Part shown: piece by piece, positions 12,787-49,279 of the stretch | Layout: every line of letters starts with the position of its first letter | Numbering within the stretch: the stretch's first letter is position 1 | From: Blastocystis sp. Blastoise | Taxonomy: Eukaryota > Protista > Bigyra: Opalinata | NCBI GenBank assembly: GCA_039096225.1 | Contig: JBBPEB010000005.1 | Span: forward strand, 558,001-622,000 | DNA: 64,000 nt | Direction of reading: 5' to 3' | Notes under the pieces: generated by a model | The model's input: only the letters and a program-made list of their open reading frames with translations | Told to the model about the DNA's origin: nothing | Databases searched by the model: none | Translations under genes and position numbers: made by a program

Positions 12787-12854
12787 CCTTAAGACAGGAA
12801 TTGAACCTGTTTTCTATCATAAACTGATAGATACTTACCAATATAAGCTTAAGG
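12787..12854 (-). ncRNA. 68-nt tRNA-like cloverleaf, copy A (in CACTA)
   Basis: ccttaag|ctta-tattgg-taag|ta|tctatc-agtttat-gataga|aa|acagg-ttcaatt-cctgt|cttaagg; all four stems pair perfectly. Confidence 0.85.
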
Positions 12855-14596
12855 ATAATATAGAATAAAAATACATAAATGAAAGTAAAATAGTAGGAAT
12901 AATGAGTCAGTATGATGTGTAAGGATATATTTATATATGTATAAGTGAAAAAGGATGCTAGAAGAAGGGAAAAGAAGTAAAAAAGAATAAAAGAGAAAGA
13001 AATATAAAGTAAATGAGATAGGGTCTTTAATTATTGAGATTAATAAAAAAAATGAAAAATAATTTATAATAAATGACAAAGATAGATATATAGAGATCTA
13101 TAATAATAAGGAATGCAGAAGAGAAGAGGATTAGAGGATAAAGAATAAGAAGAAGATAAGGAAGATAAGGAAGAAGATAAGGAAGATAAGGAAGAATAAG
13201 AAGAAGATAAGGAAGAAGATAAGGAAGATAAGGAAGAATAAGAAGAAGATAAGGAAGAATAAGAAGAAGAAAAGAAGAATAGGAAGAAGATAAGGAAGAT
13301 AAGGAAGAAGAAGAAAAGAAGAAAAGGAAGAAGATAAGGAAGAAGAAGAAGAATAGGAAGAAGAATAAGAAGAAAAGGAAGAATAAGAAGAAGAAGAAGA
13401 TAAGGAAGATAAGGAAGAAGAAGAAGAAGATAAGGAAGAAGAAGAAAAGAAGAATAGGAAGAAGAAAAAGAAAAGAAGAATAGGAAGAAGATAAGGAAGA
13501 AGAAGAAGAATAGGAAGAAGAATAAGAAGATAAGGAAGATAAGGAAGAATAAGAAGAAGATAAGGAAGAAGAAGAAAAGAAGAATAGGAAGAAGATAAGG
13601 AAGAAGAAGAAGAATAGGAAGAAGAATAAGAAGATAAGGAAGATAAGGAAGAATAAGAAGAAGGAAATGAATAATGACAACAAGAAGATGAAGAATAAAT
13701 AGAATAATGATAAGAAAGAATAAATAGATTAATAAGAGAACAAGAGGATGAATGTGAAGAAGAGACAAGGAAGGAGGTGAAAAAAAGAAAGAAAAGTAAG
13801 ATAAAGAATAGGAAGAAGATATACAAGAAAATGAAGAAGAAGAGAAAGAAAAGAAAAGAAGAATAAACAAGAAACATATATAGAGAAACAGAAAGATATA
13901 AAGAAATAAAAGAGATAGATAGATAGATAGATAGATAGAGAGAAAAAAAATACAAAGATATAAATAGATAGATACACTAATAGATGAATAGAAAGAAAGA
14001 AGAAAAGAGAGACATAAAGAAGAAATTAGATAGAAAGAGATAGAATTCTATATAGAATGAGAGATATACAAAAGAAATCAAATGAAATAGAGAATAAGAT
14101 AAAAATAGATACAAGAATAAAGATAAAAAGAGAAATAGAGGAGTAGGGAAGGTGTATAAAAAAGAAAGAATATAAAGATAGGTAGAGAGGAATTGAGAAG
14201 GATAGAGAAGGAGGAGGAAAACAGATAGAATTGGAAGACGAAGAAAAGAAGATGAGACGAAGAAGGGAGAAAAAAGGAGCAGGAAGTGAATATCAAGAAA
14301 GATAAATTTATATAGAAAAAAATTAGAAAGAAAAATACATACAAAGAAAACGATAGGGAATGATAGAGAGAATTATAATTTGAATGACATAGAGAGAAGG
14401 AGAGACAAAGCAAGATAAAGAAGTATAATAGAAAAAACAAAGAAGAAAAAAAGAAGAATAAAAAAAGAAAAGATAGAACAATAGTATATGAGAGAAGAAA
14501 GAGACAGAAAGAAAACGGGAAATAGGGTAGAGACATAGAAGGTAATAAAATATATAGAAGGGGAGAGGGGATTGAGATAAATAAATAGATAGATAT

Positions 14597-14669
<73 letters not shown>

Positions 14670-16960
14670 GATAGAAGAATACCGAAAGATATAGAGAAGG
14701 AGATAAATATTAATAAAAAGGAAAATATGGATAGAGAGGAGATAGAATCAAACAGAGAAGGAGAAGTAGATAAAAGTCGATTGAGGGAAGAGAGAAGTAG
14801 ATTAAAATAAAAACAAATAGCAAGAGTTAAAAGGAAGAAGGGAAGAATATAGAATGATTTGAAGAATGAGATGTATATAGAAGTGAATAGAAGGAAATAG
14901 AGAAGGAGAAGTAGATAGAAAAGATTAAAAATAGAAGGAGATAGAAAGATAAGAGAATGATATAGATACAATAGAATGAGATAGAGAAGATAAAGTAGAT
15001 AGAAATGGATAGAAATAAGAAAAATAAATAGGATAAGAGAGAAAGAGAGATAAAAGGATATAAAAGGATATAGAAGGAGAGAAAACGGATTGAGATGTAG
15101 TAAGATGGAAGGATGTAGATGGAAATAGAGAAGTAGATAGAAGATGATGGAGAATAAAGAGGAGATAGAAGAGGAGATAGAAGGAGAAAAAGAAGAAGAG
15201 GAAGTAAATTAAGTTAGAAGGAGATATAATAAGATAGAGAAGTAGATATACGTAGATATAAGGAAATATACGAAGATATAAGTAGATAAGAGAAAATAGA
15301 AGGAAATAGAGAATGAGATTGAGACACATAAATGAGGTAGAATGAGATAGATAAGGATAGAGAAATATGAAGAGAAATATAGGAATACAGAGAGATAGAA
15401 TGATGTTGAAAGAGAAAGAAAAGGAAAGACTGAAGATTGAGACAGAAGGAGTAGCTGAGATAAAAGGAAGATAGAGAAGGAAATTGAAAGATGAAGGAAG
15501 AAGGAGAGAAGATGAAAGAAGAAGAATATAGAAGAAGATAGAGAATGAGATAATAGGGATAGAAAGAGAAAAATAGGAAAAAAGATGGTTAGAAGAAAAT
15601 AGAAAAGGAGAAAGAAGGAGAGATAGAAGGAGAAATAGAAGGATATAAAAGAGATTAAGAAAGAAGTTAGAGACAAGAAGATATAGATATATAGAAAGAA
15701 ATAAAAGGATTAAATAGAAGATTAAGATAGAAGAAAAGAGACAAAATAGAAGTAGATATAACAATATAGAGAATGAAAGGATAGAAATAAAAATAGAAAA
15801 TAGATAACTAGAACATAAGAATATATAATAATAGAGAGAAGGAGAGAGAGAAAAAAAAGTAGATATAAAGTGGAAAAGGAGACATAGAAGGAAATATAAA
15901 AGGAAACAAGAAGGTAGAAAGAGACATATAAGATAAAATAGACAGGGACAGAGAGAAATAAATGGAAAAAGAATAAGGATAAAGATGGATACGAGAATAG
16001 AGAGGGAGAGAAGGAAGATTGAGATAGAATTATACAGAAAGAGGAGAGAAGGAAGATAAAGAAGGAAAATAGGGCAGTAAAAAAAAGGGAATCAGAAGGA
16101 GGAGAGAAGAAGTATGAGAAGAATAGAAAGAAGGAAGAGGAGGAAGGCAAATAATAGAAGAGAACTATATATATAATAAATAGTGATATAAATATAAATA
16201 AGAAGATGAAGATCTGAAAAAAGCAAAGAATTATATGGAGAAGAAGAAGAAGAAGAAGAGGAAGAGGAAGAAAAGGAGGGTATACACTAATACATGTCGA
16301 GGAAAAAGAAGTATAGAATAAGGAGAAGAGGATAACAGGATAAAAGAAAAAGACATAACGAAATACAATGTAAATAGAATAGTGATTAAGAAAGAGTAAT
16401 GAAAGAGTGATATAAAAGGGAAGCGAAGATAAGAGAGAGGTATAATTAAAAAAAAGAAAAATAAAGGAATTTAGATAGAAGAAAAAATAAAAGAAAAATG
16501 AAGATCTGAGGAAGATAATGAATCAAAGGGAGAGACAAGGATATAGGCTGGAGACAAGGCATAGGAAGAAGTAATAAAGAAAGAAGATGAAGAAATAAGG
16601 AGATAAAAGTGTAGAAGGAAGAAAATGAAGAAGAGAGAAGAAGGAATCATTTTGTGTAAGAAGAAGAAATAAAGAAGAACTAGATAATAAATAAATAAAT
16701 AAATAAATAAATAAACATACCTAATAGAAAAAAATGAATTTGGTGATGTTGAGTCATAGGGAAAGATAACCAACAGAAACAGTAGAAAACAACCTAAATA
16801 AATAAATAATAATAAATAAAAATATAAAAATAATGAAAATAAATAATAAAATGAATTAGATTCTAATTTAAGAAAAAACAAAAAGAAAGCTAATAATAGA
16901 TAGAATGAATATACGATAAGTACTCTATTATATAATACTTAAAAATATAACAAAGAAAAA
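12855..16960 (+). repeat. Purine-rich (A/G) low-complexity tract with GAAGATAAG/GAAGAATAAG array (13140-13660) and (GATA)n (about 14586-14668)
   Basis: Very few C on the plus strand. Overlapping F/L/S-rich ORFs in all minus frames are compositional. Confidence 0.9.
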
Positions 16961-18622
16961 AATTAGAGATAATTATAAAAATAAATAAATACATATATAC
17001 TTTGAAAGTAGTTTGACATCATAGACGTTGTTGACATGGACTGAAGAGGACTCTTATAACCATGGACGAGCAGGAACCTATACATGCTAGAGAATGGGAG
17101 AATGTTAATATTGATAAAGAATAAAAAATAGTAATATACATACAAGAGAATAATCTGAAGTTAAAATCAACTTCTATTTTTTAAAATAACAGCTAATAAA
17201 AATAAAATAAAAATAAAGAAAATAAGTAACAAATGAAAATATTTTCTAAGTTAATAGGCTCAATAGCGTATGGGTGTATTCAGGTCTTAAAAGAAAAATC
17301 ATTTTTGCGGGAATATCAAGAAACTCAAAAAAAGTATTTTTTCCCTCCTTTTTTCACTGTCACTTTTCTTTAATATTTTTGACTTTTTAGTATTAAAAAC
17401 GATTCTTACAGGCATGTATAGAGACTCTATACCACTTTTGAGACTAAAAATCAAATATTTAAAAATGAGTGAAAATCTTGACTAGCAAGAAAAACAATTA
17501 TGTGAAGCTGAGTATGTTGTGTATACACATATCTAACAACAGAGATGATAAAAACACACAACTCCTCTTGGTTTAGGACATAATTATGAATTCTCTCAAA
17601 AAAGCTATTTTAAACCTTAAAACGATACCCTGAACTATAAATCAAGTCCTGAATGATATTCTAAAGTCATATTTTTAAAAACAGGTTTAATGACGATAAT
17701 CAATAAACAAAAACAAGAGCTTCCGTTTTACTTTTCTTTTTTGAATTTTTAATTGTTTTGACTTTCTAGGGTAGTTGGCTGAAAGAAATGTTGTCGTCTT
17801 TAGGCTAAAAAATGATGAATAAAAAAGTCAAGTCATTTTATTGTTTTTTCCTTGGGAAATAAAAAAGAAGAAATTTTTAGGTGTGTTTTGGTTTAGGCTG
17901 TATAATGGTTTTTATTGTAAAAGGACTTGACGAGAATGATTGAAATGATAATACATCACTCAGAGAACACACAACTTTAAAAAATTTGTCACTCATGTAA
18001 TCCATTCCTGAATTATAGACTTCAGAGAAAAAATTAAAGTCTTTTTGGTTTTAAACAGTCATTTTAAATCATAAAACACTGTAAAATAGTCAATATTTAG
18101 AATGTCTATGATTATATAAATAAACAATATATTTTGTAGAGTTATTTTTAAGTTTTTCTCGTCAAAAAGAGAGAAACTTGACAAGTTGGCGGACACTCTT
18201 TTCTCGAGTTTAGGCCAACGTATTTTTGATTAAAAAATCCCAGTCATTTTGTTGTTTCTCTTACGGGAAATAGGGTCAAAAAAACACAAAATGTCCATAG
18301 TGATGTTGATGATGTAAATAGTATTCAGAATGAAAACATGGAATCAGTGTGTTATAATGAATTTACAAGTCGAGAAGATATGCTAGAATTCGAGATTAAT
18401 AATTTATACTCTATTAAAACAATATATCAAACAAAACAAGAATTGATAAAAGATATAAGTACAAAACTAAAAGATAAAGGCTATTCATATAAAATTAATA
18501 AATCAAATAAAACTTAAATAACCATTATCTGCCCTTTTAGTGATTGTGGATTCTACCTTCACTATAGAGGAAATAATATTAGAGGATTCATATTAAAAAA
18601 ATATAAAAATCATAAAAGTGAA

Positions 18623-18656
<34 letters not shown>

Positions 18657-18724
18657 TCTTATTATTTATTATATATATATATGCATTCTTATTATTCTTT
18701 TTATTCATTCTTATTACTCATTCT

Positions 18725-19060
18725 ATATATATATTCATCTTATATCATCATATTATCATATATATATTCATCTTATATCATCATATATTCATATATATAT
18801 TCATCTTATATCATCATATATTCATATATATATTCATCTAATATCATCATATATTCATATATATATTCATCTTATATCATCATATATTCATATATATATT
18901 CATCTTATATCATCATATATTCATATATATATTCATCTTATATCATCATATATTCATATATATATTCATCTAATATCATCATATATTCATATATATATTC
19001 ATCTAATATCATCATATATTCATATATATATTCTTCTTATATCATCATATATTCATATAT
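18725..19060. repeat. 33-bp minisatellite, about 10 copies
   Basis: atatatatattcatcttatatcatcatatattc unit; the ORF track shows the 11-aa repeat YSYIYSSYIII. Confidence 0.9.
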
Positions 19061-19339
19061 TGTTTGGTTTATATTCATCATGTAGAACAACTCAGTATGA
19101 ATAATTTGTATATTTATTAGCCAGTATAATATAATATGGTACACGTATTATTCATTAACAAGGAGAGTAATAACATTATTATGTTACTAAAAAACTGAAT
19201 TATTTGAATTCATTAACTAAATAATATATTTATATTTGAATACATATATCAATATTTTGAAAATGAGAATATAATGGCAACATCAGTGACTAATTAGTAA
19301 TCTAATTCATTAATACGAGAAAAGAGTTTATATCAATTG

Positions 19340-22300
19340 AGAGACTAATAAAGTTTGAATAATAGAGATAAGAATAAAAATAAATAGAAGACTAGTAATA
19401 AAAATCTGAATAGAAGTATGGACAGTAATATAAGAAGAAACAGGAGTTATAGGTACAACCAGAAGAAGGAGAATAATCTATCAATATAGTAAAATTTGTT
19501 TCATAATAAGAAGAATTTGGAAAATAAAGTAACTAAATATGTATAAGGAAGATAAAGGAGAAATTAGGATTAATAGGAGCAAGTAATGAAATAGCAACAT
19601 AAGAATGATGAATAATAATAGAAGAAGAGGAAAGTAAATAAATATAATTGAAGAAGTAGTAGCATAAGAAGAAGAATATTATACAAAATATAAGAAGATG
19701 CAGTAGTAGTGTAAGAAGAAGTAATAGTATAGTTATACCACTATAAGAAGAAGAAGAAGAAGAAGAAGAAGAATCATAATAATAATAATAAGTAGAAGAA
19801 GAAGAACAAGTAGAAGTAGACTTATAAGAAGAATATCAAGAATGAGAATGAGAAAGAAAAGGGGAAAAAGAAGAAAGAGAAATAGAAATAGAAGAAGGAA
19901 GAGAAAATAAGTACAAGTAGAATGAGAAGAATAACAATAATAAGAAGTAGTGAAGTAGATATAGATATAGAAGATATAGAAAAAGTAGAAGTATATGTGG
20001 ATGTATAAGTAAAAAAAAAGTAGTGAAGTAGAAGTAGAAGTAGATGTAACTAAGTAGAAGTAGAAGTAGAAGTAGAAGTAATTCTAGAAGAAGAAAAAGA
20101 AGAAAAAGAAGAAGAATGAGAATGAGAAGAATGACAAGATGTAGAAGTAGAAGTAGAAGTAGAAGTAGAAGAATAAGAAGAAAATAAGAAGAAAATAAGA
20201 ATAAACCAAGAATAAACATAATAAGGAAAACATCAGTAGAAGATAAGAAGAAGGAGAATAAGAATGATTAGAAGTATAAAAAAAAGAAGAAGTAGAAGAA
20301 GAAGAAAAAAAAAAAAGAAGAAGAAGAAGAAGAAGGAAAAGAAGGAGAAGGAGAAGAACAACAAGAAGAAGCAGAAGAAGCAGGACAAGTACAAGTACAA
20401 GGACAAGGAAAAGATGAAAGGCAAGAAAAGGGAGTACAACGATAAGGACAAGAAAGATAAGAATAAGGATAAGACGAATAAAGAAGAAGGACAAGGAAAA
20501 TAAGAATAAACCAAAAATAAGTATAATAATGAAAACATCAGTAGAAGCTAAGGATAAGTAGCATGAGAATGATTAGAAGTAGAAGTACAAGGATAATAAA
20601 AAGAAGAAGATGGAGAAGGGAGAAGAATATGTGGAAATAAAAGAAAAAACATGAAAATAAAATGTGGAACAAGAAGAGACTAAAAAGAGAATAGAAGGAG
20701 AGGAGTAAAATATGAATAGGAAGGAGAAGGATAAGAAGGATAAGAAAGATAAGAGGATAAGAATGACAAAGAGAAGGACAAGATGGAGCAAGAGATGAAC
20801 GAGAAGAACGAAAAGCAGAAGAAGGAACAAGAGAAGAAGAAGAAGTAGAAGTAGAAGTAGAAGTAGAAGTAGAAGTAGAAGTAGAAGTAGAAGTAGAAGT
20901 AGAAGTAGAAGTAGAGTAGAAGAAGAAGGAGAAGGAGAAGAAGAAGGAGAAGAAGAAGGAGAAGGAAAAGGAAAAGGAAAAGGAGAAGAAGAAGAAGAAG
21001 TAGAAGAAGAAGAAGAATAAGGAGAACAAAGGGAAAATAAGAATGATTATAAGAATAAGTATAAGGATAATAATAAGAAGAAGACGTAGAAGCAGAAAAT
21101 ATGTGGAAGTAGAAAAAGAAACATATAAAATATGGAACAAGAAGACTAAAAAGAGAATAGAAGGAGAGGAGCAAAATATGAATAAGAAGGAGAATAAGAA
21201 GGATAATGATAAGAAGGGGAAGAGTAGAAGAATGACAAAGAGAAGGAGGAGAAGGAAGAAAGAACGAGAAAGAGACGAATGGAGAAAGGAAAGAGAAGAG
21301 GGAGAAGGATAAGAAGAAGCAGAAGGAAAAGTAGAAAAAGGAGAAGCAAGAGTAGAAGAAGGATAAGAAGAAGCAGAAGGAAGAGTAGAAGAAGGAATAG
21401 AGAAGGAGAAGTAAAAACAGAAAGAGAAAGAAAAAAAGGAACAAGAGAAAAAGAAAGAGAAAGAGAATGAGAATGAGAAGAATGAAAAAGAGAAAGAGAA
21501 AGAAATAGTAGTATAGAAGTAGAAATAGAAGCAATAATAGTTGGAAAAGGAAAATTAGAAGAAGAAGAAGGTGGAGAAGAAAAAGAAGTAAAAGTAAAAG
21601 TATAAATAAAAGAAGAATAGGAAGGAGATATAGAAGCAGACGAATAAGAAGAAGTAGAATGAGCATGAAAAAGAAATAAAAGTATTAGTAATAGTGTAGA
21701 AGTAGAAATAGAAATAGAAGGAAAAGGAGAATTAGTAGTAGAAGAATGAGAAATAGAATATAGAAAAGAAATAGAAGAAGAAGAAGAAGAAAGAGAAGAA
21801 AGAGAAACAGAAAGAGAAGAACAAGGAGAAGTATAAGCACAAAGATAATGAGAAGAAAAAGAAGTAGTTGTAATAGAAGTGAATGTAGAAGTATAAGAAG
21901 TAGTAGAAATAGAAGTAGAAGTAGGAGTTGGAGTTGGAGTACAAGCGAAGTAGAATAGAAATATAAGTAGAAATATAAGTAGAAGAATGAGAAGTAGTAT
22001 TAGTAATAGTGTAGAAGTCGAAATGGAAGAAAAAGAATAAGAGTAAGTAGTAGTCGTAGAAATATGAGTATAAGCAAGTAGAAATAGAAGAATAAAGAAA
22101 AGAAGGAAAGAAGCTGAAGTAGAAGAAGTATAAATAAAAGAAGGTAAATATAAGAAGAAGAAGAAGAAGTATAAGGAAAAGAAGGTAAATATAAGAAGAA
22201 GAAGAAGAAGAAGTATAAGGAAAAGAAGGTAAATATAAGAATAATAATAATAATAATAGTAAGGAGAAGTAGTAAAAAAGAAGAAACAGAAGAATAAGGA

Positions 22301-25300
22301 GGAGGAGGAGGAGGAGGAGGAGAAGAAGAATAAGGAAAAGTAAAAAGGAGTAAAATTTTGAGAAATAGAACGAGAAGTAAAAGAATAATAAAAAGCAAAC
22401 TTTAATAAGTATGGATAGAAGAAGAAGAAAAAGAAAAAGAAAAATAATTAGAAATAGAATAATGAGATTGAAAATGATAAGAAAAAGGAAAATCATGAAA
22501 GATAATAGGAATAAGAATAAGAAGAATAAGTAGAAGTATAAGGAGGAGTATAAAGAAAAAGGAGATAAGGAGTAGAACAGAAGTAGAAGGTAATGTTGAA
22601 GAAAAATAGGAAGGCTGATAATAAGGAAGATAAAGAGAAATAGAAGGAAAAGGAGAATGTGAAGCAAAATAAGAATCACAAAAAGAAAAAGAAGAAGTAG
22701 AAAGAGAACGAGAAGAATTACATTTTTAGTGAGGAGAAAAAATGTAAAAAAAGAAGAAATATAATAATAAGAATGAGAACAAGAACAGGAATGAAAATAA
22801 GAAAATGAATGATACTACAAATTAAAGGAGTAAGGAGGAGAGAAAATATAGAGTAAAAAAAGATATAGAAGAAAGAGAAGATAGTGAATAGGAGAAGAAG
22901 AAGATAAAGTAGAAGAAGAAGTAGAGCGAGAAACAGAATAAAGTGAAAAGAAAAGTAGAATGAAAATAAGAAAGATAATAGGAATATAAATAAAATGTAG
23001 AAGAAGAAATAGAAGTAAAATGAGACGAATTTAGAAAAAAAATACATAAAGCAGAAGAATATGAAGAATAAGAAATGAGAAACGTACAAATAGAATAATG
23101 AGAAATAGACAAGAAAGTAGAAGAAAGGCAAAAAAAGAAGAATCTGGAAAAAATAAGAATAAGAATAAGAATAAGAATAAGAATAAGAATAAGAATAAGA
23201 ATAAGAATAAGAATAAGAATAAGAAGACTAAAAAGGAGAAATTAAAATAAAATAGAAGGAGAAAAAGGAAAAGATAAAGAAGAATAAGAAGGAAAATAGG
23301 AATAGTAGAATAGAACAGAGATTGAAAAGTATAAAGAAAACAAGAAGAAGAAGGAAAGCAATAAGATGAAGAAATAGAATAAATAATAAGAAAATGAAGA
23401 ATACGAATAATGAATATAAGAAGCAGAAGTGAATCAAAAGAAGGAGAAATGTAAGAATGATACTAATAATAAGAAGAAGAATAAGAAATAAGGCTAAGTA
23501 GAAGTAGAAGAAAAATACTAATTAGAAAAAGAATACTAATTAGAAAAAGAAAATAAGGTTAAAATGTATAACTACAAATAGAATAATAGAGAGAAAGATA
23601 ATGTTAGTAAAATTTATAGAATAAGAAGTAGAAGGAGAATAATAAGAGAAAAGATTAGGAAGTAGAAGTAGAAGAAGAGTATGAAAGATAATGAGAATAG
23701 GAATAAGAATATGAAATGAATAAGAAATACAATAAGAAGTAGAAGTAGAATGAGGGTGAGAAATATAATGTGAATAAGAATAAAAAGCGAAAGGTGAATA
23801 AGTAGTAGAAGTTGATTAAGAAGTAGACAGAAAATGGAAAGTAAAATAATAAGGATAATGAAATGGAAAAAAAAATAGGAATAACACTAAGAATACTAAA
23901 TGAAATAGAAAAAGAATAAAAAGATGAAATAGAAGAAGAATCAAAAGAAGACAGGAAAAGAAGTAGGAGGTGAAGTAGAACGAGAATAAGTGTAAGAATA
24001 AGAATAATTGGAGTATTAGAAGATTAAGAAGAAGGAAAATAGGAATAAGAAGTAAGGTATAAATTACTATAAGAAAAAAGAAGTATAAGTAACTAGAGAA
24101 GTAGAAGAAAAACGAAAATATAAATAAGACGATGAAAGAAAAGGAGAAAGTAAAATATGAAAGAAAAAGAGAAGAAAGAGTATAATAATAATAAGAAGAA
24201 GAAAGAGAAATTGAAATATAAGGAGAAGTTGAATAAGAAGAAGAATGTGAAATATAAGAAGAAGCTGAATAAGATAAAGAAGTAAAAGTAGAAGACGGAG
24301 AAGAAAATATGAATACGAATATCAGGAAGGATAATAAAAGAAGATATCAACAACAAAGAGAACAAGAAGCATCAAGGAAGCATAAGTATAGAAGAAGATT
24401 AAGGAGAAGAAAAATATGGTGTAAAGGTGAAAGAAGAAGAAGAAGAATAGAAAAAAGGAGAAGGAGAAGAAGGAGAAGAAGAAGAAGAAGAAGAAGAAGA
24501 AGAAGAAGAAGAAGGAGGAGAAGAAGGACATGAAGGAGGAGGAGAATGACAAGAATGGCAAAAAGTAGGAGAAGTAGAAGAAGTAGAAGAATAAGAAAAA
24601 GAAGAAAGAGAAGAAAATAAGAATAAACCAAGAATAAGCATAATCAGGAAAAAACAGTAGAAGGTAAGGATAAGTAGAATGAGAATGATTAGTAGTAGAA
24701 GTATAAGAAGAAAAAGAAGAAGAAGAAGAAGAATATATGGAGCAAGAAGAGAATAAAAAGAGGGAGAAGGAGAGGAGCAAAATATGAATAAGAAGGAGAA
24801 TAGGAAAGATAAGAAGGATAAGAAGGACAAGAAGGACAAGAAGGACAAGAAGGACAAGAAGGACAAGAAGGAGGAGGAGAAGAAGAAAAACTATATGAAG
24901 AAGGATAAGAAGGAAAAAGAAAAGTTGGGGAAAAAAGATGAAAGAGAAAGAAAAGGATAAGAAGAACAATTATAAGAAGAAGGACAAGAAGGAAAAAAAG
25001 AGGAGAAGAAGAAAAATTATAAGAAGAAGGACAAAGAGGAGGAGGAGAAGAAAGAGAAGAAGAAGAAGGATAAGAAGGGCAAGAAGGAGAGGAAGGAATG
25101 TCAAGAAGAAGAAGAAGAAGAAGAAGGATAAGAATGAGAAGAAAAACAAGAAGAAGGATAAAGAAAAGTAAAAGTATAAATAGAAGGAGAATAAAGAAAA
25201 GGAGATAGAGATGGAGACAAAAAAGTAGACGTAGAAGGAGAAAAATAAATAAATAAAAGTATAGTAGTAGAAACAGAAGTATAAATAGAAGTATTAGGAA

Positions 25301-26290
25301 TAAGAAAATGAGAATTATTAGAAGAAGAAAAATGAGAAGAAAAATGAGAAGAAGAAGAAGAAGAAGAAGAAGAATGAGAAATTGAATATAGAAAAAAAGA
25401 AGAAGAAGAAAAGAGAAAGAGAAAGATAATAGCAAGAAGAAGTATAAGTATAAGAAGAATGAGAAGAATAAAGTAGTAGAAGCAAAAGCACGAGTACGAG
25501 TAGGAGTAAAAGCAGAACTACAAGTAGAAATATAAGCAGAAATATAAGTAGAATAATAAGAAGTATTATTATTAGTAGTGTAGCTGTAGAAATAGAAGAA
25601 AAAATAAAAGAGTAGTAGTAGTAGAAGAAATATAAGTAGAAGTACAAGTAGGAATAGAAGAATGAAGGAAAGAAGGAAAGAAGGAAGAAGCTAAAGGAGA
25701 AGAATTGCAAGGAGAATAAGGAAAAAAAAAAGGAACAAAATGGAATGGAAATGATAACGAGGGAAAAAAAGAAAAGAAGAAGAAGAAAAAAAAATAAGAA
25801 GATGTAGAAGGATAATAAAAGAAGAAACAACAATAATAATGAGAACAAGAAGTAAATCTATAATGAAAAGGAGAAGTGGAAAGGAAGTATAGTAGAGAAG
25901 AAGAATAATGAAAAGTAAAATAAGATGTAAAGGTGAAAGAAGCATAAGAAGAAGTAAAGTAGAAGAAAAAGAAGAATCATGAAAGGATAAGAAGAATGAA
26001 GAATAATGAAAAGGATAGGGATAAGAAGTATAATGAGAAGGACGAAGAAGTAATAGTAGAATTTGTGAAGAGGTAATAGTAAAGAAAAGAAAAGTTTATA
26101 TCTATACATAAAAGAAGAAAAATTAGAGTAAGATGTACAGTAGAATTATGAATTAAGAATTAACAATAAAGAATAAAGAATAAAGATTAAGAATGAAGAA
26201 TGAAGAATTAAGAATGAAGAATTAACAATAAAGAATGAAGAATGAAGAATGAAGAATGAAGAATGAAGAATGAAGAATGAAGAATTAATA
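19340..26290 (+). repeat. Purine-rich low-complexity tract of MULE-A with internal duplicated modules and (GAAGTA)n, (AATAAG)n, (AAGAATG)n microsatellites
   Basis: Read directly; inverted homologue at 49280-55640. Confidence 0.9.
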
Positions 26291-26939
26291 CCAATAAATC
26301 TAAAAAATATATAATATTATAAAAATAGAATAATAATAATATTATAAAGACAAAAAATAACATATATATTATTAATAGTCAGTTAAAACAAACTAAATAT
26401 ATTATTAAATACATATATACCTTAATAAAGACTTGAATCATTGCAATCTGTTTTTTTGGTTGTGCTTCAGTTTGATTGGTTTTACTAAAGAAATAAATAC
26501 GTAGAATAAATTAAATAGATAAAAGTATATATATATTAAAGAAACAACTAGATAGAAAAGTAGGAGCTAATTCAATTATAAAAATAATAATACTAATGAA
26601 AACAAAATAAATATGTTATGTGAATGATAAAAATATACTAATAGCATAGACATGAAATAAATATAGCAAAGAATAAACAAAATGAGAAAATGTAAAATAA
26701 TTATATACCTTAGATTCATCTTTATTGTTCACCAAGACCTTTAGAGTTGATTTGAAACTAGATATAGCTTTTTCTGAATATCTAAACAATACGCAACCAA
26801 TTGATCAACTGATTACTATATAAAACAAAATATTTGAAGAGAGTAAACTATATAATATATATATTTATGACTAGAAAACATACGTAGATCCATTTTATAT
26901 GTCTATAATGACAATATATGAAATAAAACAATATTTGAG

Positions 26940-39100: not shown

Positions 39101-39584
39101 AGAAGCAGAAAGAAATTATCAAATGTTAAATAGAGAACAAAAAGAAATATTTGATAGAATTATGGTATCTGTTAATAATACTCAACCTCATAATAATAAT
39201 ATGTTCTTTATTGATGGTCCTGGTGGAACTGGAAAAACATTCTTATATAATACTTTGATTAAGATGATTCGTACAAGAGAAAAACCTGTATTAGCTGTTG
39301 CATTCACAGGAATAGCAGCTACTTTATTATCAGGAGGAAGTACTTCTCATTCTGTATTTGGATTACCTCTTGATCTAAATGAAATGTCTATTTCACATAT
39401 AACAAGAAGTAGTGCAAAAGCAAATGATTTAAGAAAATGTGCTATTATTATTTGGGATGAAGCACCTATGGCTTCTATTTATGCTTTAGAAGTTCTTGAT
39501 AATTTATTACATGATTTATTTAGTTCAATAGATTCTGAAGATCCATGTCTTCAATATCCTTTTGTTGGTAAAACTATTGTTTTA
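36119..39584 (+). pseudogene. Helitron-2 RepHel, part 2 (HUH Rep domain and helicase motifs I-II)
   Basis: PDYFITFTCNP, VEFQKRGLPHAHIL, KYLYKY, GPGGTGKT, IIWDEAPM. Ends GKTIVL at the MULE-B TSD. Confidence 0.93.
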
Positions 39585-39670
39585 GGAAAAATGTTAGAAA
39601 TACCCAGATTTCCCTATTGATTTGTATACATACCCAATTTTTTGTATGATTTGTTAGAAATACCCAAAAA
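39585..39670 (+). repeat. MULE-B left TIR, TGTTAGAAATACCC motif at 30-bp period
   Basis: TACCC at 39601, 39631 and 39661. Confidence 0.9.
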
Positions 39671-40889
39671 TTTCTGTTAACATTTTGATTTCGTTGTCCA
39701 ATCGTATTAATTTATATAATAACCGTGTTTATTAGATGTATTTCAAGAATTTAAATTAATAAAAAATGAAAAGAATAATTCATATTATGACGTTAGGATT
39801 TGACTATTTGATCCAATCAATCGATTTTTAAGTTTCTATTAGAAGTTCGTCTATTGTACTATATAATTCTAAGAATTTGCTTTTTGGCAATTTTATCTAT
39901 TTTTATTTATTTATATTCATTCCTTATTTTAATCAATATATACATTTATTTTGTTATATAACTTTTATTTATACTATTAATTCAATAAAATAACTTAATA
40001 GACAAGGATCATAATATAATTGTCTGTAATTGTTTTAAAAAATAAGATTAACAGACAAATAAACCATAAATAGCTATGAAATAAATCTGATTAAAAAGAG
40101 TAACCTAAAATTACGTTATATAACATACTTTTAATTTACTTACAAATAAACTAATTCAGCCAATACTTTATATAAGAGCTATGTTTTTATATGGTATAAG
40201 TTTATAAATCTTATAAATATGATTTTAGTAAATAGAACTTATTTTTTGATAATTAACAGATTTCTTGACTCTTTTAATTTTCATATATATTATTACAGTG
40301 TCATGAAAATATTGTATAAGGACAAATACATAAATATTAATCTTAAATAACTGTTTTAAGAGTATGAACTGTGAATTGATTAAGAAAAATATTTAATAGA
40401 TGACGAGATTCAAGTTAAAACGTTTTGTTTGGTATATGGTATTCGTTTTTCTTTACTATATCAAAAGGACAAATAGTTTTATAATGGATCAAGTAAAATG
40501 TCGAAATGGAAAAATGTTGTTTAAAAATCATGAATACGTATGTATTGTACTTAGTTGTTTGTATTGAGTATACTGACCAGAATTCAGTTAAAAATAATAA
40601 ACTACAGTCGTTAAAGTATTAATGATTGCTGAATATACTCTGTATTTGAGTATATTTTGAAAATAAAAAATGAATCTAAGTTTTAAAACTGTATTTAACT
40701 CAATTCAAACATATTTTGAATAAGCTACACTTTTGAGAATAAAACAGATTACAACTCATTTCAGAAACTATGAAGTTTTGAAGGATGAAGAGCTATAAAT
40801 AATTTAATAAATACATTAATAAGTGTAAAAAGAACATATAATTAAAACGTTTATTAAATAAAAAAAAATATATATATATATATAGAATG

Positions 40890-40957
40890 ACTTATGTCAG
40901 GAGTTGAACCTGATTGTTATCGAATTATGATAGCCTCTCACCTTATAGAGCATAAGA
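40890..40957 (-). ncRNA. 68-nt tRNA-like cloverleaf, copy D (MULE-B; positional orthologue of C)
   Basis: tcttatg|ctct-ataagg-tgag|ag|gctatc-ataattc-gataac|aa|tcagg-ttcaact-cctga|cataagt. Confidence 0.8.
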
Positions 40958-41090
40958 GTAATAATAAATAATAATAAAATACAATATTTAATATATATAT
41001 CTAAAAAAGATGAATCAATAATATAGATATATAAATATATACTTATCTCTTTCATATATATTTATCAAATAGAATACATATTACTGTTGC

Positions 41091-41134
<44 letters not shown>

Positions 41135-41249
41135 GAAAAAATTATTTTAATATATAAATTAAATATATAAACAAGAAACATATAAAATAATAAGTATAAA
41201 TAAGAAATAAAAAGGATAAAATCTTTTTATTAATAAAAATAAATACTAT

Positions 41250-43250
41250 ATTAATTAGTATAGTAGATAGAAATAGTTTAAATATGGAGAGAAGTATATA
41301 TATAGATATAAGATGATAAAAGATAGGAATTGAATATAAAAAAATGAAAACATGAATATGAAGAATATAGGAAAATAAATTAGGAAAAAGAAAAATATTA
41401 AGTAAATGAGAAGAAGAAGAAGGAGGAGTTAGTTAATAGGATAGAGAATAAAAAGCATATATATAAAGAAGAAGAATAAGAATAGGAAGCGAGTAAAAAA
41501 TAAGATAAGAAGGTAAGAAGAAAAGAAAGATAGATGGATAATAAAAAGTCATGTATAGGAGAAGAAGAGAAAACAGATAGAGAAGAGAGTTAGAAGAAGA
41601 ACAAGGGAGAATAAATTAAGAAGGAAATAAAAATATAAGTAGAGTACACATAGGAAGTACAAGTGTAAATGTAGGAAAAAAGATAGTATATGATGAAAGA
41701 AAAAGAGTATAAAAGATTATATATATATATATATATAATTGATATTATGTGTAATAAATCGAGAGAATATTGAGATAAAGAGGAAATAGATGAAAAGGAA
41801 TAAAATTAGAATAATATAAAGAGTAAAGAAGGAGAAGACGAAGGAGAAAAATGATATATAGAGATATCGAAATCGAAGAAGGAAATGATAGAAGAAGTAG
41901 AAGAATGATGATAAAAGAAGAAGGAAGAGTAGGAGGAGGAGGAAAATAATGATATATAGAAGAAGAAGAAGAAAAAGTACATATAGAAGATATAGAAATA
42001 GAAAGAGATAGAGATAGAGAGAAAGAGAATGATAAAATGAAGAGAAGGAGACTGAGAAGGAAAAGAAGGAAAAGAAAGATATATAGAAGGAGAATAAAGA
42101 GAAGCATAAAAAGAAGAAGAAGATACGGAAGAATATGGAGAATAAAGATATATAGAGAAATAATGAACATCAAAATATATAGATAAAGAAAGGTATATTG
42201 AAGATATAGAAGAAAAGAAGGAGAAGAAGGAGATATTTAAGAAGAAGAAAGAGACAAGAAGAAGATACAGTAGAAGAATACTATGGAAAATAATGATAAA
42301 TAGAGGATACAGAAGAATAAGAACAATAAATAGAAGAAGAAGAAAGATATATAGAAGAAGAAGCAAAAATAAGATATATAGAAGAAAAACGATATATAGA
42401 AGAGGAAAGATAAGAATAAGGATATATAGAAAAAATAGAAAACATAGGAGGAGAATGATATAGATAAAATGTATAAGAAGAATAATGGCAAATAGAAGAA
42501 GGAATGCAGAGGAAGGATATATAGAGAGAAAAAGAATATATATACGAAGGATATATAGAGAGAAAAAGAATATAAAGACGAAGGATATATAGAAGATGAA
42601 GGATATATATAAGATATAGAAGAAGAATAAAGATATATATAAGATATAGAAGGGGAATAAGGATATATAGAAGAAGAGGAAGAAGAAGAGATACAGAAGA
42701 GATTGAGAGAAGGAGATTGAGATTGAGAAGCAAAAGAATGGTATATACAAGATATAGAAGCATAAGGATAAATAGATGAAGAAGAACGAGTAGGAAAAGA
42801 ATATTGGAGACAGAAAAGGAGAAGGGGAATAAGGATATATAAAAGAAAAAGGAATATAGAAAGAACGTCTAGATGAAGAATTAAAAGGAATAGCGAATAG
42901 AAAAGTAGAAGTGGAAAGATATGAAAAGGAAGTAATGACATAAGAAGAAAATGAAGAAGAACAAGAAGATTAAGATATAGAGGTGGAAATGAAGAGAAGA
43001 TGTAATTATAGAAGGAGAACACAAAAAGGAAAGATAAGAAGAATGTAAGGAGAATGATAAGTAAGAACTAAAGAAAAAAGGTATATTATATAATGAAATG
43101 TGATATTGAGTAGTATTAATAGTAGTAACAATTACCCGAATCAACACGATGACTATAAGAAAAATATAAAGTATAACAAAGAAATTAATAAGAATAAAAT
43201 GGAAAAGAAGGCAAATATAGACAAAAAGAAAACCAAATATATATAGAAAT
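41250..43250 (+). repeat. Purine-rich low-complexity tract (MULE-B)
   Basis: Read directly; inverted counterpart of 32540-34520. Confidence 0.88.
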
Positions 43251-43252
43251 AG

Positions 43253-43289
<37 letters not shown>

Positions 43290-43443
43290 ATATAATTAAA
43301 AAAAAGAAAAAAGTGCATAAATTAATATTAATAAAAACTTCAAATAAGTACATAGAAGAAACTAATAATATGTATAAATAGAAATAATTTTCAAAAATTA
43401 AGAAATTTATATTATAAAATCAAAACATAAGAAGTTAATAATA

Positions 43444-43474
<31 letters not shown>

Positions 43475-44996
43475 CATAAAAGAGAAGAACCAAGAATTTA
43501 GTGACAAGAAAAGCAAGAACTAGATTTAATAGCTATATAACAACCTATATAAACATTAATATAATTATATAATTATATTTATATAAAAAAAATGTAGAAA
43601 ATATATACATCTAGAATCAGAATATGAGTTAAACCAAGTAACTTCAAATATGAATATTTGAATTGTAGATGTAGTGATTATGTGAATAGATCATGATTCT
43701 GTATGATTCAAGACAAATCTGTTTAGACATTTGACCAATTGATTTTTTGAAAGTTTCAAGCAACGCTCAGTTAACATAGCCAAGCATTTCCCACTCATTG
43801 ATAAAACCTAAAGAAATAGTTTTATATGGTGACGTCACATCATCCCATTTATAACCACGACACAATAGCTGACCATCTAGTACAACCACTTTACATCACC
43901 TAGATTAGCTCATAATAGAGAAAGAGAACATACCAGTTTAGATCAATCTGCCAATGGAGACTGGAAGGTACTCTAATATACTCCTAGGGACTATATATAG
44001 ATAGATATATGCTTAGAACATACAAAAGCTAAATTAATCATATTTTTTATATGATTATTGAAACTTCACTATAAATTAACTTATTAAAAATTATTAAAAT
44101 CCTAATATTTCTACTTTTTATTATTAATTATTTTATTTAAATAGTTTAATCAGTTATTCTCACTCCTGATGTCTTGTTGTTGTTATTGGAGTATGTATTT
44201 AAGTAAATAAAATTAGTTAATTGATTAATTATTTATAGAGTGTTGAATAAAATAAAATTGATGCTTCTTGTCATAAGGAAATCGTTAGACTTGATGAAGA
44301 CAACAAGAATTAGTTGATTATGTGATACTCACTAGATTGTCTAAATGTGTAAAATTGTCAGAAATGATGAGTTTATGTGTGTTTGAATTTGAATTCTACA
44401 TTAATTAAAATACGTCTTTTAGTAATTAATTTAATTTTAGGGAAGTTACAAACATAATTGATTTCTCTTGGTGATATGTTGAGATAGAATGCCTTTATTA
44501 TGAATTTCTATTAATAATTTAAATTTAATCATGACTCGTATAAGCCAAAGTTGATTATAATAGTTTTTTAGGTAATGTAAAATTTGTTAAGGTTCTTCAA
44601 AAGTTTTTAAAGTTGGTTAGAAATGATTCTTAGTGTCAATCATATTAATATAAACAGTAGAAATGCCTTTTAAGAGTATAAACAAATAATGTATTGCGTG
44701 TTTATAGACTTCAAGATATTATTGATGAATATTTATTTTTTATTTGTGTGTAAAATTGATGAATAGGATACATAACTCAACAAAATAATGACTAGATAAT
44801 TTTGGGTGATTGTAATTGTGAATGTGTTTGGTTTTAAGTAAAGGTATCTAAAATTATTATAAAAGAGCGACTAACGACGTATAGAGTTGATTCAATTGCA
44901 TGAAACTCAATGTATTTATTCATATTGGTTCTAATGAATGAGAATACCTATAGGGAAAAAACATTTAAATTTTTTTATAAAAAATATAGTATACAA

Positions 44997-45064
44997 CCTT
45001 AGATCAGGAATTGAACCTGATAGCAATCTATTAATGATTGCTACTGACCATATTCAGTCTAAGG
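44997..45064 (-). ncRNA. 68-nt tRNA-like cloverleaf, copy E (MULE-B; positional orthologue of B)
   Basis: ccttaga|ctga-atatgg-tcag|ta|gcaatc-attaata-gattgc|ta|tcagg-ttcaatt-cctga|tctaagg; all stems are Watson-Crick. Confidence 0.87.
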
Positions 45065-45083
45065 AATATTAATTATATGAATA

Positions 45084-45116
<33 letters not shown>

Positions 45117-45834
45117 TTGAAGAAAAGAGACTATAAAAATATTGTAATTATATATATATATACTCTATTACACCTATTAATACTAACCTAAATAATAAAA
45201 ACATGTAGAATAAAAAGATTATTTCAATATACAATAGAATATAATGTAATTAAGAATAAAGTTAAAAATAGAATATTAGCAAACAATATATATAATAAAT
45301 ATATACAATATATACTATCTATATTAAGTTGTATACGAACATAGAAGATAAGCTAAAGATACGTTCTATATATAGATTAAAAAAAAATTAATATATATAT
45401 AAATAAAATAAACACATTATATTGTTATAATAGAAAATACTACATAGCAAGCTATATAAATATAAATAAAATACATACAAAAGGATTGTATACATTATTT
45501 GTAATAATTCATAAAAGCTGATTATAGACTATATATATAAAATGAATGAATAAGACGGCATGAATTAATTAAGGGAATACCAAGTCTATATATATATATA
45601 TATGAATATATACATATATGTAATTATGAGAAAAATATATATATAAAGTAAAAAATATATATATTTAAATATAACATAGGAACATATTATGTATATGTAT
45701 TAAAACAATTAAAATACATACTCTTTACGTAGAATCTATTTAATATCTTCACAAACTATATATATTAATAATAGTACACTATAGTGAGTATAAATGTATA
45801 TAATAGAAAAGAAAGCTGGAAAATATAAAGAAAA

Positions 45835-45877
<43 letters not shown>

Positions 45878-46760
45878 AGAAAATAAGGTTTAACATAATA
45901 CAAAAGTAAATCATTCAAAACAATTATATATATCCTTAATCCTATATATAATAAAAATGATATTAGTATAGTATTATAAACAAAAAGAAAATGTAGTATA
46001 CATAACACTAAGTGTATATATAATTAGTATCAAAATAAATAGATAATATATATAAAAGGAGATAAATACAAAGTATATATATTATCATAGAAAATATACT
46101 AGTATAATTGAACAAAAGAGATAAAAAGAAGAGTTATTACTGTTACTACATATATATACATAATTAACTATAAACAAATTATATTATAAAATGATAATAC
46201 ATAATATAGTTATAGAAAGAAAAAGTGATATAAAAGAATAAAATAGAAGAATAGTTGAGATAAAATTATATATACAAATAATATTACCTTTTGTGTCAAT
46301 TATAAAAAATGTATTATATATATAATAAGATAAAAAGACTATATACTTAAAAACTCATGAGAAAAATAAAAGGATAACTGATATATTACTATATATAAGT
46401 CTATAAGTTTATATTTATATAATAAGTATATATAAAAGTATATATATAATATATTTATATATACCTTAAATACATAAAAATAATGTAGTAATAGAACTAA
46501 AGACCACTATATATAGATAATTCTTCATTATTCTATTTATATATAACTTTGACTTTGATAAATAATATATATATATATATATAAAGTTTAAGAATAAACA
46601 ATTGATATGAACTGATTCTAGTATATATTATCAACTTCCAAAATAAAACATATATCAATTTTCTAAAGAGTATATATTTGGTAAATATATCTGTGAATAT
46701 GTTATATAGAGAGAAAAATGTATAAAATAATAATATAAAAAGAATACAATAAAAGTCTAT

Positions 46761-46845
<85 letters not shown>

Positions 46846-49279
46846 TTCTTCAACTAAAGCAACATTCGTATATTTATATAACACCTATATAATATATATA
46901 TGTAATTACAGTTTTACTAGTTATATTTTTATATAACTAATAAAACTATAGAGACATGAATAACAGAAATATAAACAATAGGATATTATTAGTAATTATA
47001 GGTACATAATATAAATTATATAAAAAAAATAAAAAATTATTGTACGGAAAATAGAATAATATATAAAAATAATGTGAAACAATATACTACAATAAAACAA
47101 TTACTTACATATAAAAACTATATACCTTAGATATAAAAATTGATGACCATGAAGTTTATAACATAAGGGAAACGTCACATTCTCTATATAAAAATACTAG
47201 TTAATATATAAATATATATATATATATATTAAGAAGTAATAGAAAATAATATGCTAATAATTAAATATATATATAATATACCTAGTCACATAATAGTATT
47301 GATGTAGAGAAGCTAATGAGTACATAGCTTAATAATACTATATATATGAATAAGAATAAAATATATCGAAAATAAATAATACATATATATATATATAAAC
47401 TATAATAAAAGAATGATAATTAATAGTCCTATATAGAAAAATAATATAATAAATTAATAAAATATTAAGAATTTATAAATAATAAAAATATATATATATA
47501 TATTTGAACCATATATCAATGTTAGAGCCTCAGTTATAACAAAAATAAATAACTACAATATACAAATTTAATTAAACAAATATATATAATTTTAATAATA
47601 TAAAAATAAAAAAATATATACTTTTTAGCCATATTCTTCTAGTATTTTTTTTTGTATATATAACCATATCAATTTACTCCATATATCTATAGAAAAAAAT
47701 AATTATTTAATATATTTATATACTTTTAAGGACTCGATAATTGTGCTGAAATCGAAAAGTTACAAAAATTCCAAAACAATAATCACTTGCCATTTCTATA
47801 TAATTAGATACAATATAGCATTAATAACATAAATATATACTTCTGATAAAAAAATAAAATAATAAAAATCAAAAGAAGGACCTAGACATCAATTTTCTTA
47901 GTAGATGGAGACCAATTACTTTTTTTCTTTTGAATTTCCTAAATAAATAATTAAATATACAAACAAAAAACAAAATAATATACCACTAGAACATACACCA
48001 AAGAATATTCTTAAAGAGGAAATTCCGATCATTGCGTTTTCTTCCAATATTGTAGCCAACTCCACCGGGCTCTCTAAATCATGTTTCTAAACCTATATAA
48101 ATAATGGTAAATCAAATAAGTATATACGTGAAAGAATGAATCACTAATTGGTTTATTATCTGGATTCATTTCAAGCCTAATCTATAATAATCTACCTAAT
48201 AAAATATAATATAAATATAAATAATAAAATAACCTTCTAAATAAGCAAATAATCCATATAATAATATTTAAAAAATATTCTTTTTTAGGAGTTCATTTAA
48301 GCCGTAGCTGAATACGGTTTTCCAAAGATTTAAGTGATTCTGAAAGACTCCAAGAATAGGGACCATATCAAAGAAGACTTTTTATACCATACTTTGAATC
48401 TCTAGAAATTATTTTTAAAACTTGTTCACTGAAACCCAAAAAAGTTTCTATAGAAGAGATTAATTCCGCTATTTAGGCTGTTTTTCCTCTGTTTCCATCC
48501 TCAGAATGGTTATTTCTTGAAAATCAAATATTGATTTATTTCATATATTTTCATTATAAGCATATAAAATGAATCTATGTATGTTTTCTAGTTATAAATA
48601 TATATATTATATAGTTTACTCTCTTCAAATATTTAATTTTATATAGTAATCAGTTGATCAATGGGTTATTTCTTGTTTATATGCTCAAAACAAACTTCAT
48701 CTGGTTTCAGATCAATTCAAAAGGTCTTGGTAAACAATACTGATGAATCTAAGGTATATAGATATTTTTCATTTTCTCATTTTGTTTATTTTTTGCTATA
48801 TCTATTTCTTGTCTATGCTATTAATACATCACTATCATTCTAATAGCATCCCTATCTTTTTTTAATTTTATATTATACTTTTTATAATTGAATTAGCTCC
48901 TATTTTTCTATCTTGTTGTTTTTCTAATATGTTTATACTTTAATTAATTTTATTAATTTATTCTACGTATTTATTTATAGAATCTTAGCGTATTTAAGCA
49001 CAACTTGGGAATCAGATTGCGATGATTCAAGTCTTTATTAAGGTATATATGTATTTAATAATATAGTTAGTTTGTTTTAACTGACTATTAATAATATATA
49101 TGTTATTTTTTTCTTTATATTATAATTATTAATATTCTATTTTTATAATATTATATATTCTTTAGACCTAGTGGTATTTTTATTGTTTCTTCTATAAAAC
49201 AAAAAATTGATTACAAATATTATTAGTCTATTAGGAAAGTTGCAATTTATTATTCTTTTATTTATTAAATTTTTTGGTT

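Follow-up and report, generated by a model that had tools for sequence, protein, structure and literature searches.

What are the cloverleaf-shaped sequences that stand at the ends of long low-complexity tracts in the genome of Blastocystis sp. 'Blastoise', and do tract and cloverleaf together make a gene? The question is raised by a stretch of 64,000 nt (GCA_039096225.1, JBBPEB010000005.1:558001-622000; referred to here as the window) in which an initial annotation had seen spliced leader exons, a multi-kb tract and a cloverleaf arranged in that order, and had proposed that transposons carry long non-coding RNA (lncRNA) genes with 3' ends made at tRNA mimics. The sequence evidence leans instead to independent RNA polymerase III (Pol III)/TFIIIC-type elements, which was that annotation's own alternative, and the 'cassette' is best explained as transposon cargo, carried by a CACTA element (cloverleaf A), by a Mutator-like element (MULE) and its older partial copy (cloverleaves D/E and B/C), and by Helitron-derived units (F and G).

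The window holds six cloverleaves of about 69 nt, named A to F, at the sites where they had been placed from the sequence alone, and the T-arm motif GGTTCAAYTCCTG, for which 0.03 occurrences are expected, is found six times. They are listed here with their covariance-model scores and, where given, the z-score of the minimum free energy (MFE) fold:

12786-12854, minus strand: cloverleaf A, subfamily A; 84.8 bits; MFE structure is the cloverleaf, z = -4.4
30687-30755, plus strand: cloverleaf B, subfamily B/E; 92.7 bits; MFE structure is the cloverleaf, z = -2.9; lies to the left, within the inverted and partial copy of the MULE cargo
34793-34861, plus strand: cloverleaf C, subfamily C/D; 81.5 bits; pairs with D in the self-alignment; lies in the left partial copy
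40889-40957, minus strand: cloverleaf D, subfamily C/D; covariance-model match; inside MULE-B
44996-45064, minus strand: cloverleaf E, subfamily B/E; 95.2 bits; inside MULE-B
61605-61673, plus strand: cloverleaf F, subfamily F; 93.8 bits; 154 nt inside the 3' terminus of a minus-strand Helitron and antisense to it

The covariance model was built from the copies and then run over about 0.45 Mb of the same genome, made up of the window and further loci (labelled L001, L002 and so on), where it found 26 cloverleaves, six in the window and 20 at other loci (a lower bound for the genome), including a near-identical copy of cloverleaf A at L015:16681-16755. These form seven sequence subfamilies (A, B/E, C/D, F, G, H and I). 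When the 15 distinct sequences are aligned, 95.2% of cells are paired in a four-helix structure and compensatory changes are seen in 12 of the 21 base pairs, a level of pairing and compensation that none of 500 shuffled controls matched, while slid controls pair at 33-44%. The cloverleaf is also the MFE structure of six of the seven subfamily representatives (z of -2.7 to -4.4). It has a 7-bp acceptor stem, a 5-bp 'anticodon' stem with a variable loop, and a 3-nt variable region, and the D stem abuts the acceptor stem with nucleotides 8-9 absent, a register that fits better than the canonical one.

Conservation is limited to this tRNA-sized unit, within which the B box is fixed in sequence and the other stems covary. 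The 17-nt T arm TCAGGTTCAAYTCCTGA corresponds to the consensus B box and is identical in every subfamily but H, which differs at two T-loop positions (GGTTCAAACCC); the core GGTTCAAYTCC is found in 14 aligned sequences of six subfamilies, four of the five T-stem pairs never vary, and all 15 sequences have GG in the D loop. The anticodon loop is variable, with the triplets TTT, TAA, AAT and TTA (the pseudo-anticodon loop of cloverleaf A is AGUUUAU) and with G-type loops shortened to 5-6 nt. Across subfamilies the alignable sequence stops at the cloverleaf borders: flanks compared upstream gave AT microsatellite similarity only, and the one block shared between subfamilies downstream lies at +520 nt and is restricted to F, G and I. 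Within a subfamily the copies are near-identical and their flanks are common for kilobases as parts of transposons or of tandem units, the G- and F-type units forming tandem arrays of about 4.3-5.3 kb.

We note that the downstream block is a tandem repeat of about 500 bp that begins some 520 nt from the F, G and I cloverleaves, with approximately 70% identity (window 62195-62547, L001 4103-4846 and L012 8177-9484). It is followed by a module of about 1 kb (62833-63748) which also occurs upstream of Helitron-1 copies.

The cloverleaves are, as far as their sequences tell, tRNA-derived mimics under structural constraint and not decoding tRNAs, because their anticodon loops vary between subfamilies; the view of them as tRNA mimics in the initial annotation is borne out by this variation and by the Rfam tRNA model, with which they score below threshold. 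Rfam gave no tRNA match in the window at the gathering threshold and none at E up to 10 (50 kb), where only a microsatellite 'mir-297' and weak chance matches were returned, and in 130-nt slices the tRNA model gave 12.4 bits for D (threshold 29) and nothing for E. Among the six window copies D alone was called by ARAGORN with default settings (as tRNA-Ile AAT), and the mitochondrial mode found one of the six. The geometry of a tRNA gene (nucleotides 8-9, a variable loop of 4-5 nt, and a conserved 7-nt anticodon loop with U33) is lacking, and the internal B box and the T- and D-loop invariants are present. Neither a tail nor a target-site duplication (TSD) was found at the cloverleaves, as would mark the head-body-tail unit of a short interspersed element (SINE) with its own TSDs. 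We also considered whether the cloverleaf might be a Helitron 3' terminus and rejected this, as the real termini consist of a GC hairpin and CTAG, and F is antisense to one such terminus and 154 nt inside it.

The elements that carry the cloverleaves, together with the other transposons of the window, are as follows:

39587-59946, minus strand: MULE-B, 20,360 bp; carries D, E and three tracts; identified by TSD, subterminal repeats and transposase
~55932-59286, minus strand: MULE-B transposase gene; open reading frame (ORF) 56270-58189; PF10551 (MULE) and PF04434 (SWIM)
20255-35327, plus strand: left arm ('MULE-A'), an inverted, diverged partial copy of the MULE-B interior, 65-90% identical to it; carries B and C
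9755-18302, no strand assigned: CACTA element, 8,548 bp; carries tract unit X and cloverleaf A; identified by terminal inverted repeat (TIR), TSD and empty site
308-6117, plus strand: Helitron-1, apparently intact; 1558-aa Rep/helicase ORF at 1230-5906 (PF14214 and PF05970), its product 100% identical to a Blastocystis sp. 'Blastoise' protein; hairpin and CTAG|T at 6050-6117
36110-39586, plus strand: 5' part of Helitron-2, split by MULE-B; Rep/helicase ORF 36159-39620 (PF14214, PF05970)
59947-61224, plus strand: 3' part of Helitron-2; GC hairpin 61187-61222 and a non-canonical end, ...CGCTTG
61391-61448, minus strand: Helitron 3' terminus near F, a GC-rich hairpin and CTAG|T; the body runs rightwards and includes cloverleaf F

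That the cloverleaves are carried by transposons, as had been proposed, is supported: TSDs and empty sites prove the boundaries of the CACTA element and MULE-B, and F lies inside a Helitron terminus. MULE-B is flanked by the 11-bp TSD ATTGTTTTAGG (39576-39586 and 59947-59957), has five TGTTAGAAATACCC subterminal repeats, inverted at both ends, and has an empty site in L002, where the split Helitron-2 is contiguous (28305-23528). There are at least seven copies in the genome, which are 99.8-99.9% identical over the 14 kb retrieved for each (L003-L009) and encode an identical 853-aa transposase, and from these sequences the 20.36-kb element was probably active recently. D and E lie within the TSD-bounded insertion of the window copy and we infer that they moved along with it. 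Five of the seven MULE copies were seen within about 150 kb of a contig end. The CACTA label was likewise sound, with a TIR, CACTATGGACATTTT, that matches at 15 of 16 positions, the TSD ATG (9752-9754 and 18303-18305), and an empty site (L016 2107-2501/2494-2882); the element is probably non-autonomous because the non-tract part contains no transposase ORF of at least 150 aa, the long minus-strand tract ORFs being composition artefacts.

Two further labels had to be changed. 'MULE-A' is not a MULE in its own right: no TIR between its ends, terminal motif, TSD or transposase was found in 20255-35327, and self-alignment places it inverted against 40489-55616, with 65-71% identity in the tracts and 81-91% in the unique parts, which also establishes B/E and C/D as the inverted orthologues they were thought to be. 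The large ORFs that had been taken for MULE genes contain PF14214 and PF05970 and are Helitron Rep/helicases. Helitrons are recognised by such a protein and by a 3' GC hairpin with CTRR and a host T, and the window has both, with CTAG|T at 6050-6117 and 61391-61448.

The tracts were found by composition at the positions expected, and comprise the following:

12916-17226, minus strand: tract unit X, with its leader at 17226 to ~16960 and then ~4 kb of pyrimidine-rich tract; composition
27860-30660, plus strand: AT-rich tract upstream of B; GC 13-17%, mildly T-rich, low-complexity
~45100-47900, minus strand: mirror tract upstream of E; self-alignment and composition
32540-34520, plus strand: pyrimidine-rich tract upstream of C; GC skew -0.47 to -0.87
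~41100-43150, minus strand: mirror tract upstream of D; self-alignment and composition
49000-55616, plus strand: 6.6-kb pyrimidine-rich tract in MULE-B, with no cloverleaf at its end; composition and covariance model
19600-26300, minus strand: mirror of the 6.6-kb tract, also without a cloverleaf

On the strand of the cloverleaf, the upstream DNA is 82-86% pyrimidine for A and 66-85% for C/D, the tract upstream of B/E is AT-rich and mildly T-rich (56-60% pyrimidine), and F is preceded by a microsatellite and has no long upstream unit, as had been said of it; downstream of the cloverleaves the DNA is balanced in every case. We compared the pyrimidine fraction 50-500 nt upstream of the cloverleaves with that of random positions and strands in the same loci, using a cut-off of ≥0.65. 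This was reached in five of the seven subfamilies (background probability 0.081), with tract adjacency and co-orientation in A, C/D, G, H and I, and the upstream DNA was more pyrimidine-rich than the downstream DNA in all seven. Judged by sequence composition, the association of the cloverleaf with upstream pyrimidine-rich DNA is thus real and exceeds chance at the genome scale, and orientation elsewhere in the genome, which the initial annotation had put forward as a check, is not random. The usual order is T/C-rich low-complexity DNA, AT microsatellite and cloverleaf, all on the strand of the cloverleaf. It should be noted that the tract-then-cloverleaf arrangement is present as reported, and that the five instances counted represent three independent units (A, B/E and C/D), two of the pairs being duplicates. 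The repeated architecture of the window therefore follows from the duplication of the MULE cargo, which gives the two pairs, and from the genome-wide upstream rule.

Tortoise-derived Blastocystis genomes have a GC content of 21-23% and about 12% low-complexity DNA (PMC10690189), so multi-kb simple tracts are a genome-wide trait and not specific to this locus. Tract and cloverleaf are furthermore separable modules because each recurs alone. Unit X is a discrete repeated module that stops 58 nt short of cloverleaf A, and its homologue at L002 18786-23571 has identical ends and no cloverleaf; cloverleaf A recurs in L015 with 2.9 kb of downstream DNA, and there a Helitron-1 3' end replaces the tract at 12915|12916. 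The largest tract, which is 99.8-99.9% identical across the seven MULE copies, ends without a cloverleaf, and the covariance model finds none at the tract of 19.6-26.3 kb or its mirror, in agreement with the earlier remark that the unit running leftwards from 26900 lacks one. Conversely, all nine F-type copies lie 121-154 nt inside a Helitron terminus, or 529-617 nt where the microsatellite has grown, antisense to their Helitron, with a spacer of (TATATTATA)n and no upstream unit. The link is not absolute, as had been allowed for.

Several other observations concern the tracts and their neighbourhood. The Helitron-1 3' ends at L015 16625 and L002 18617 (both corresponding to window 12915|12916) face opposite ways and meet at one and the same AT dinucleotide; a hot spot for insertion, or recombination, may account for this shared junction. 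An overlap of 43 nt between the end of Helitron-2 and unit X was dismissed as chance low-complexity similarity. Between the two MULE-cargo copies a 1.2-kb block (window 31100-32300 and 44660-43450) is approximately 90% identical, far above the tracts; it corresponds to the 'exons' of the initial annotation, has a GC-richer core at ~31770-32000 and contains no ORF of 50 aa or more, and none of this length was found in the conserved block 43845-44986 either. A second MULE family at L016 10001-21146 has a 721-aa transposase, 37% identical to that of MULE-B, followed by a tract of about 8 kb that is ~68% homologous to the MULE-B tract, which may be an old conserved part of these MULEs.

We tentatively read the cloverleaves as transposon-borne, tRNA-like RNA genes of Pol III type, a reading that we consider quite possible, if far from assured, on the sequence features given here. 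Each cloverleaf would be a small transcription unit with an internal B box and the remnant of an A box, TATA-like (TA)n on its 5' side and oligo-T as a terminator on its 3' side. Its product would be a tRNA-shaped RNA, or else TFIIIC would be held at the site, and the L-shaped fold would be kept by selection. The tracts are separate low-complexity modules whose juxtaposition with the cloverleaf may have been inherited or favoured. Consistent with a Pol III-type unit, five of the seven subfamilies have an oligo-T run, T5 or longer, in the 25 nt 3' of the cloverleaf (background 0.092).

Several points weigh on the other side. The geometry departs from the canonical one and the A box is degenerate, no T run lies near copies A, C, F1 and F2, and the counts of G·U and A·C pairs (9 vs 5) do not clearly pick out the transcribed strand. 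The Pol III-type reading gives no account of the pyrimidine-rich upstream DNA in five of the seven subfamilies. The loci were sampled via transposon proteins, so that the sample is biased towards repeats, and the enrichment tests may overcount, as the subfamilies may descend from a single ancestral tract-plus-cloverleaf cassette. D and E were seen in the window copy of the MULE, the other six copies having been retrieved over 14 kb each.

The proposal of RNA polymerase II (Pol II) lncRNA genes, with leader exons and a U/C-rich body and with the 3' end made by RNase P at the tRNA mimic as in MALAT1/mascRNA, would explain the adjacency and co-orientation of tract and cloverleaf in the five subfamilies, and no part of the cloverleaf is better kept than the acceptor/T-arm minihelix (7 + 5 bp), on which RNase P and RNase Z depend. 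It also gains from a candidate intron in the leader of unit X (GTATGT at 17143, AG at 17088-17087) and from RNA-seq-guided gene models on the pyrimidine strand of several tracts, those of L002 and L010 among them. However, these gene models may be ORF artefacts, the two modules are separable, the largest tract has no cloverleaf, and what lies upstream of the nine F-type copies is a transposon end and not a transcription unit. The oligo-T enrichment would have no role, the Rfam mascRNA-menRNA model gave no match at E up to 10 in short slices around D and E, and no element for nuclear expression (ENE), or triple helix, with an A-rich tract was found by eye or alignment in the 140 nt upstream of any subfamily, where (TA)n, (TTA)n, (TATATTATA)n or a Helitron end was found instead, with no structured element common to the subfamilies. 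We regard the lncRNA proposal as improbable, and it is less favoured than the Pol III-type reading. More doubtful again is its boldest form, in which a stramenopile would have independently evolved MALAT1-like 3' ends, with RNase P cleavage at the mimic giving the pyrimidine-rich transcripts of CACTA, MULE and Helitron elements their ends and their stability, and with a functional RNA of ~70 nt that acts, for example, in the silencing or anti-silencing of transposons.

Passive copying is another explanation. A tRNA-derived sequence (a pseudogene or SINE head) might have been captured once and then multiplied within its hosts, with the covariation left from past evolution of a master gene, and capture of host sequence is known for both Helitrons and MULEs. 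The near-identical copies with common flanks within each subfamily point to spread inside larger repeats, the anticodon loops are unconstrained in sequence and can shorten, and every copy found lies in repeat-rich DNA. Against this, plain decay in a genome of 23% GC should degrade stems as fast as flanks, yet the T arm is invariant outside H, 12 pairs are compensated and the flanks are unalignable; no free-standing master gene was seen in the sampled loci, and the TSDs or tails of retroposed units are absent at the copies. We think such a relic unlikely, if still deserving serious consideration. The least probable of these explanations, and to us a very doubtful one, is a role at the level of DNA, in which the cloverleaf (as DNA or bound by TFIIIC) is a landmark for integration or rearrangement, and Helitrons and tract units accumulate upstream in a constant orientation, as is the case for elements that use tRNA genes as targets. 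Two Helitron-1 3' ends and the end of unit X do share the 12915|12916 point 58 nt upstream of cloverleaf A, and the F-type copies keep a fixed distance from their Helitron terminus. But the first of these amounts to two junctions at one site, the second is also explained if the cloverleaf simply belongs to that Helitron family, and a B-box landmark needs no compensatory changes in three stems.

In the public annotation the pyrimidine-rich strands of the tracts are assigned long 'proteins' of 422 to 4773 aa, some of them fused to Helitron genes (window 53694-55654, plus strand, and its equivalents in L003-L009; L001 24029-28380; L015 20182-26388; and L002 20116-28380). The L002 gene model runs from Helitron-2 into tract unit X, and that of L010 stops 22 nt before a G cloverleaf. 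The RNA-seq used for guiding gene models was poly(A)-selected (PMC10690189). Pyrimidine-rich strands are without stop codons, so that, barring genuine RNA-seq support, the tract ORFs are likely to be composition artefacts. When one of the tract ORFs was used in a protein search no matches came back, probably owing to the low complexity of the ORF.

Other searches added little. Those with the transposon proteins returned no homologues from the two sister tortoise isolates, amino-acid identity between isolates being only 56%, an exact-product look-up of the Helitron-2 Rep/helicase ORF found nothing on record, a metagenome scan with a 22-base family-specific pattern gave a single chance match within a coding region, and no relevant paper on tRNA-like elements in Helitrons came up in a search of the literature.

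A few features of the surrounding repeats may be recorded here. Helitron-1 is present in many copies of 92-98% identity (window, L002 and L017), with head-to-tail tandem arrays in L002 and L017. At L001 1255-5524 / 6540-10806 there is a 4.27-kb palindrome, 99.9% identical, around a 1-kb Helitron-1 3' fragment near the contig start; the block recurs at two other contig ends (L011 and L015), and the palindrome is either a genuine inverted duplication of subtelomeric DNA or an artefact of long-read assembly. Immediately beyond the right end of the CACTA element (window 18626-19153), ~16 copies of a 33-nt unit stand in tandem, with identities of up to 98%, and a 70-nt stretch similar to this repeat is found inside the MULE transposase region (about 58200). 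A (TA)n expansion directly follows cloverleaf C.

Modules with the shape of a tRNA are already known from SINEs, where they form the head, from chromatin boundaries, and from the 3' ends of a few lncRNAs of vertebrates, where they act as signals. What is seen here is a single cloverleaf family common to three superfamilies of DNA transposons, one of them recently active, which keeps its fold by compensatory change and has a consistent, polar relation to low-complexity DNA that makes up about 12% of the genome. If an RNA is made, transposons would here clearly be carrying a structured non-coding RNA gene under selection, and this could help explain the origin or tolerance of the long tracts; if not, the family is still useful for repeat annotation. 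There is also a warning in that several of the long 'proteins' annotated in the tracts are probably composition artefacts.

Among known systems, the mascRNA and menRNA of vertebrate MALAT1 and NEAT1_2 (PMC8457004, PMC4824109) resemble the Blastocystis cloverleaves in being tRNA-shaped and non-decoding, in following immediately after a long stretch of unusual composition on their own strand, and in their intact acceptor/T-arm minihelix. They differ in that mascRNA has a reduced anticodon arm and the cloverleaves have four full arms, with no match to Rfam RF01684 in the slices around D and E. The cloverleaves are also many-copied, are all in transposons, occur without an upstream unit as well as with one, and have oligo-T immediately after them.

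The likeness to tRNA genes and to tRNA-derived SINE heads (Pol III type 2) lies in the B box GGTTCAAYTCC, the D-loop GG, the tRNA-sized conservation, the downstream oligo-T, and the multi-copy, dispersed occurrence. Unlike tRNA genes, the cloverleaves lack nucleotides 8-9 and a conserved anticodon loop, and their variable loop has 3 nt; the Rfam tRNA model failed on them and five of the six window copies fail ARAGORN. Unlike SINEs, they move as the cargo of DNA transposons, without TSDs of their own or tails of the long interspersed element (LINE) type.

B-box elements in repeat-rich DNA, often near contig ends, with adjoining simple repeats and sometimes in symmetric inverted pairs, recall TFIIIC-bound tRNA genes and extra TFIIIC (ETC) sites, as well as the tRNA arrays of Entamoeba. 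ETC sites need only a B box, and the arrays at Entamoeba chromosome ends are real tRNA genes with short tandem repeats. In the Blastocystis family, by contrast with ETC sites, the whole cloverleaf covaries, and a boundary role here is putative.

Like Pack-MULEs, gene-capturing Helitrons and Helitrons with internal microsatellites or tandem repeats, the MULE, the CACTA element and the Helitron units described here have cargo other than transposase, multi-kb simple repeats included, and these Helitron units occur in tandem arrays. In contrast to ordinary captured fragments, one structured, RNA-like module is found here in three superfamilies and evolves by compensatory change. The most fitting description of the family is a tRNA mimic of conserved structure that travels as cargo in CACTA, MULE and Helitron elements.

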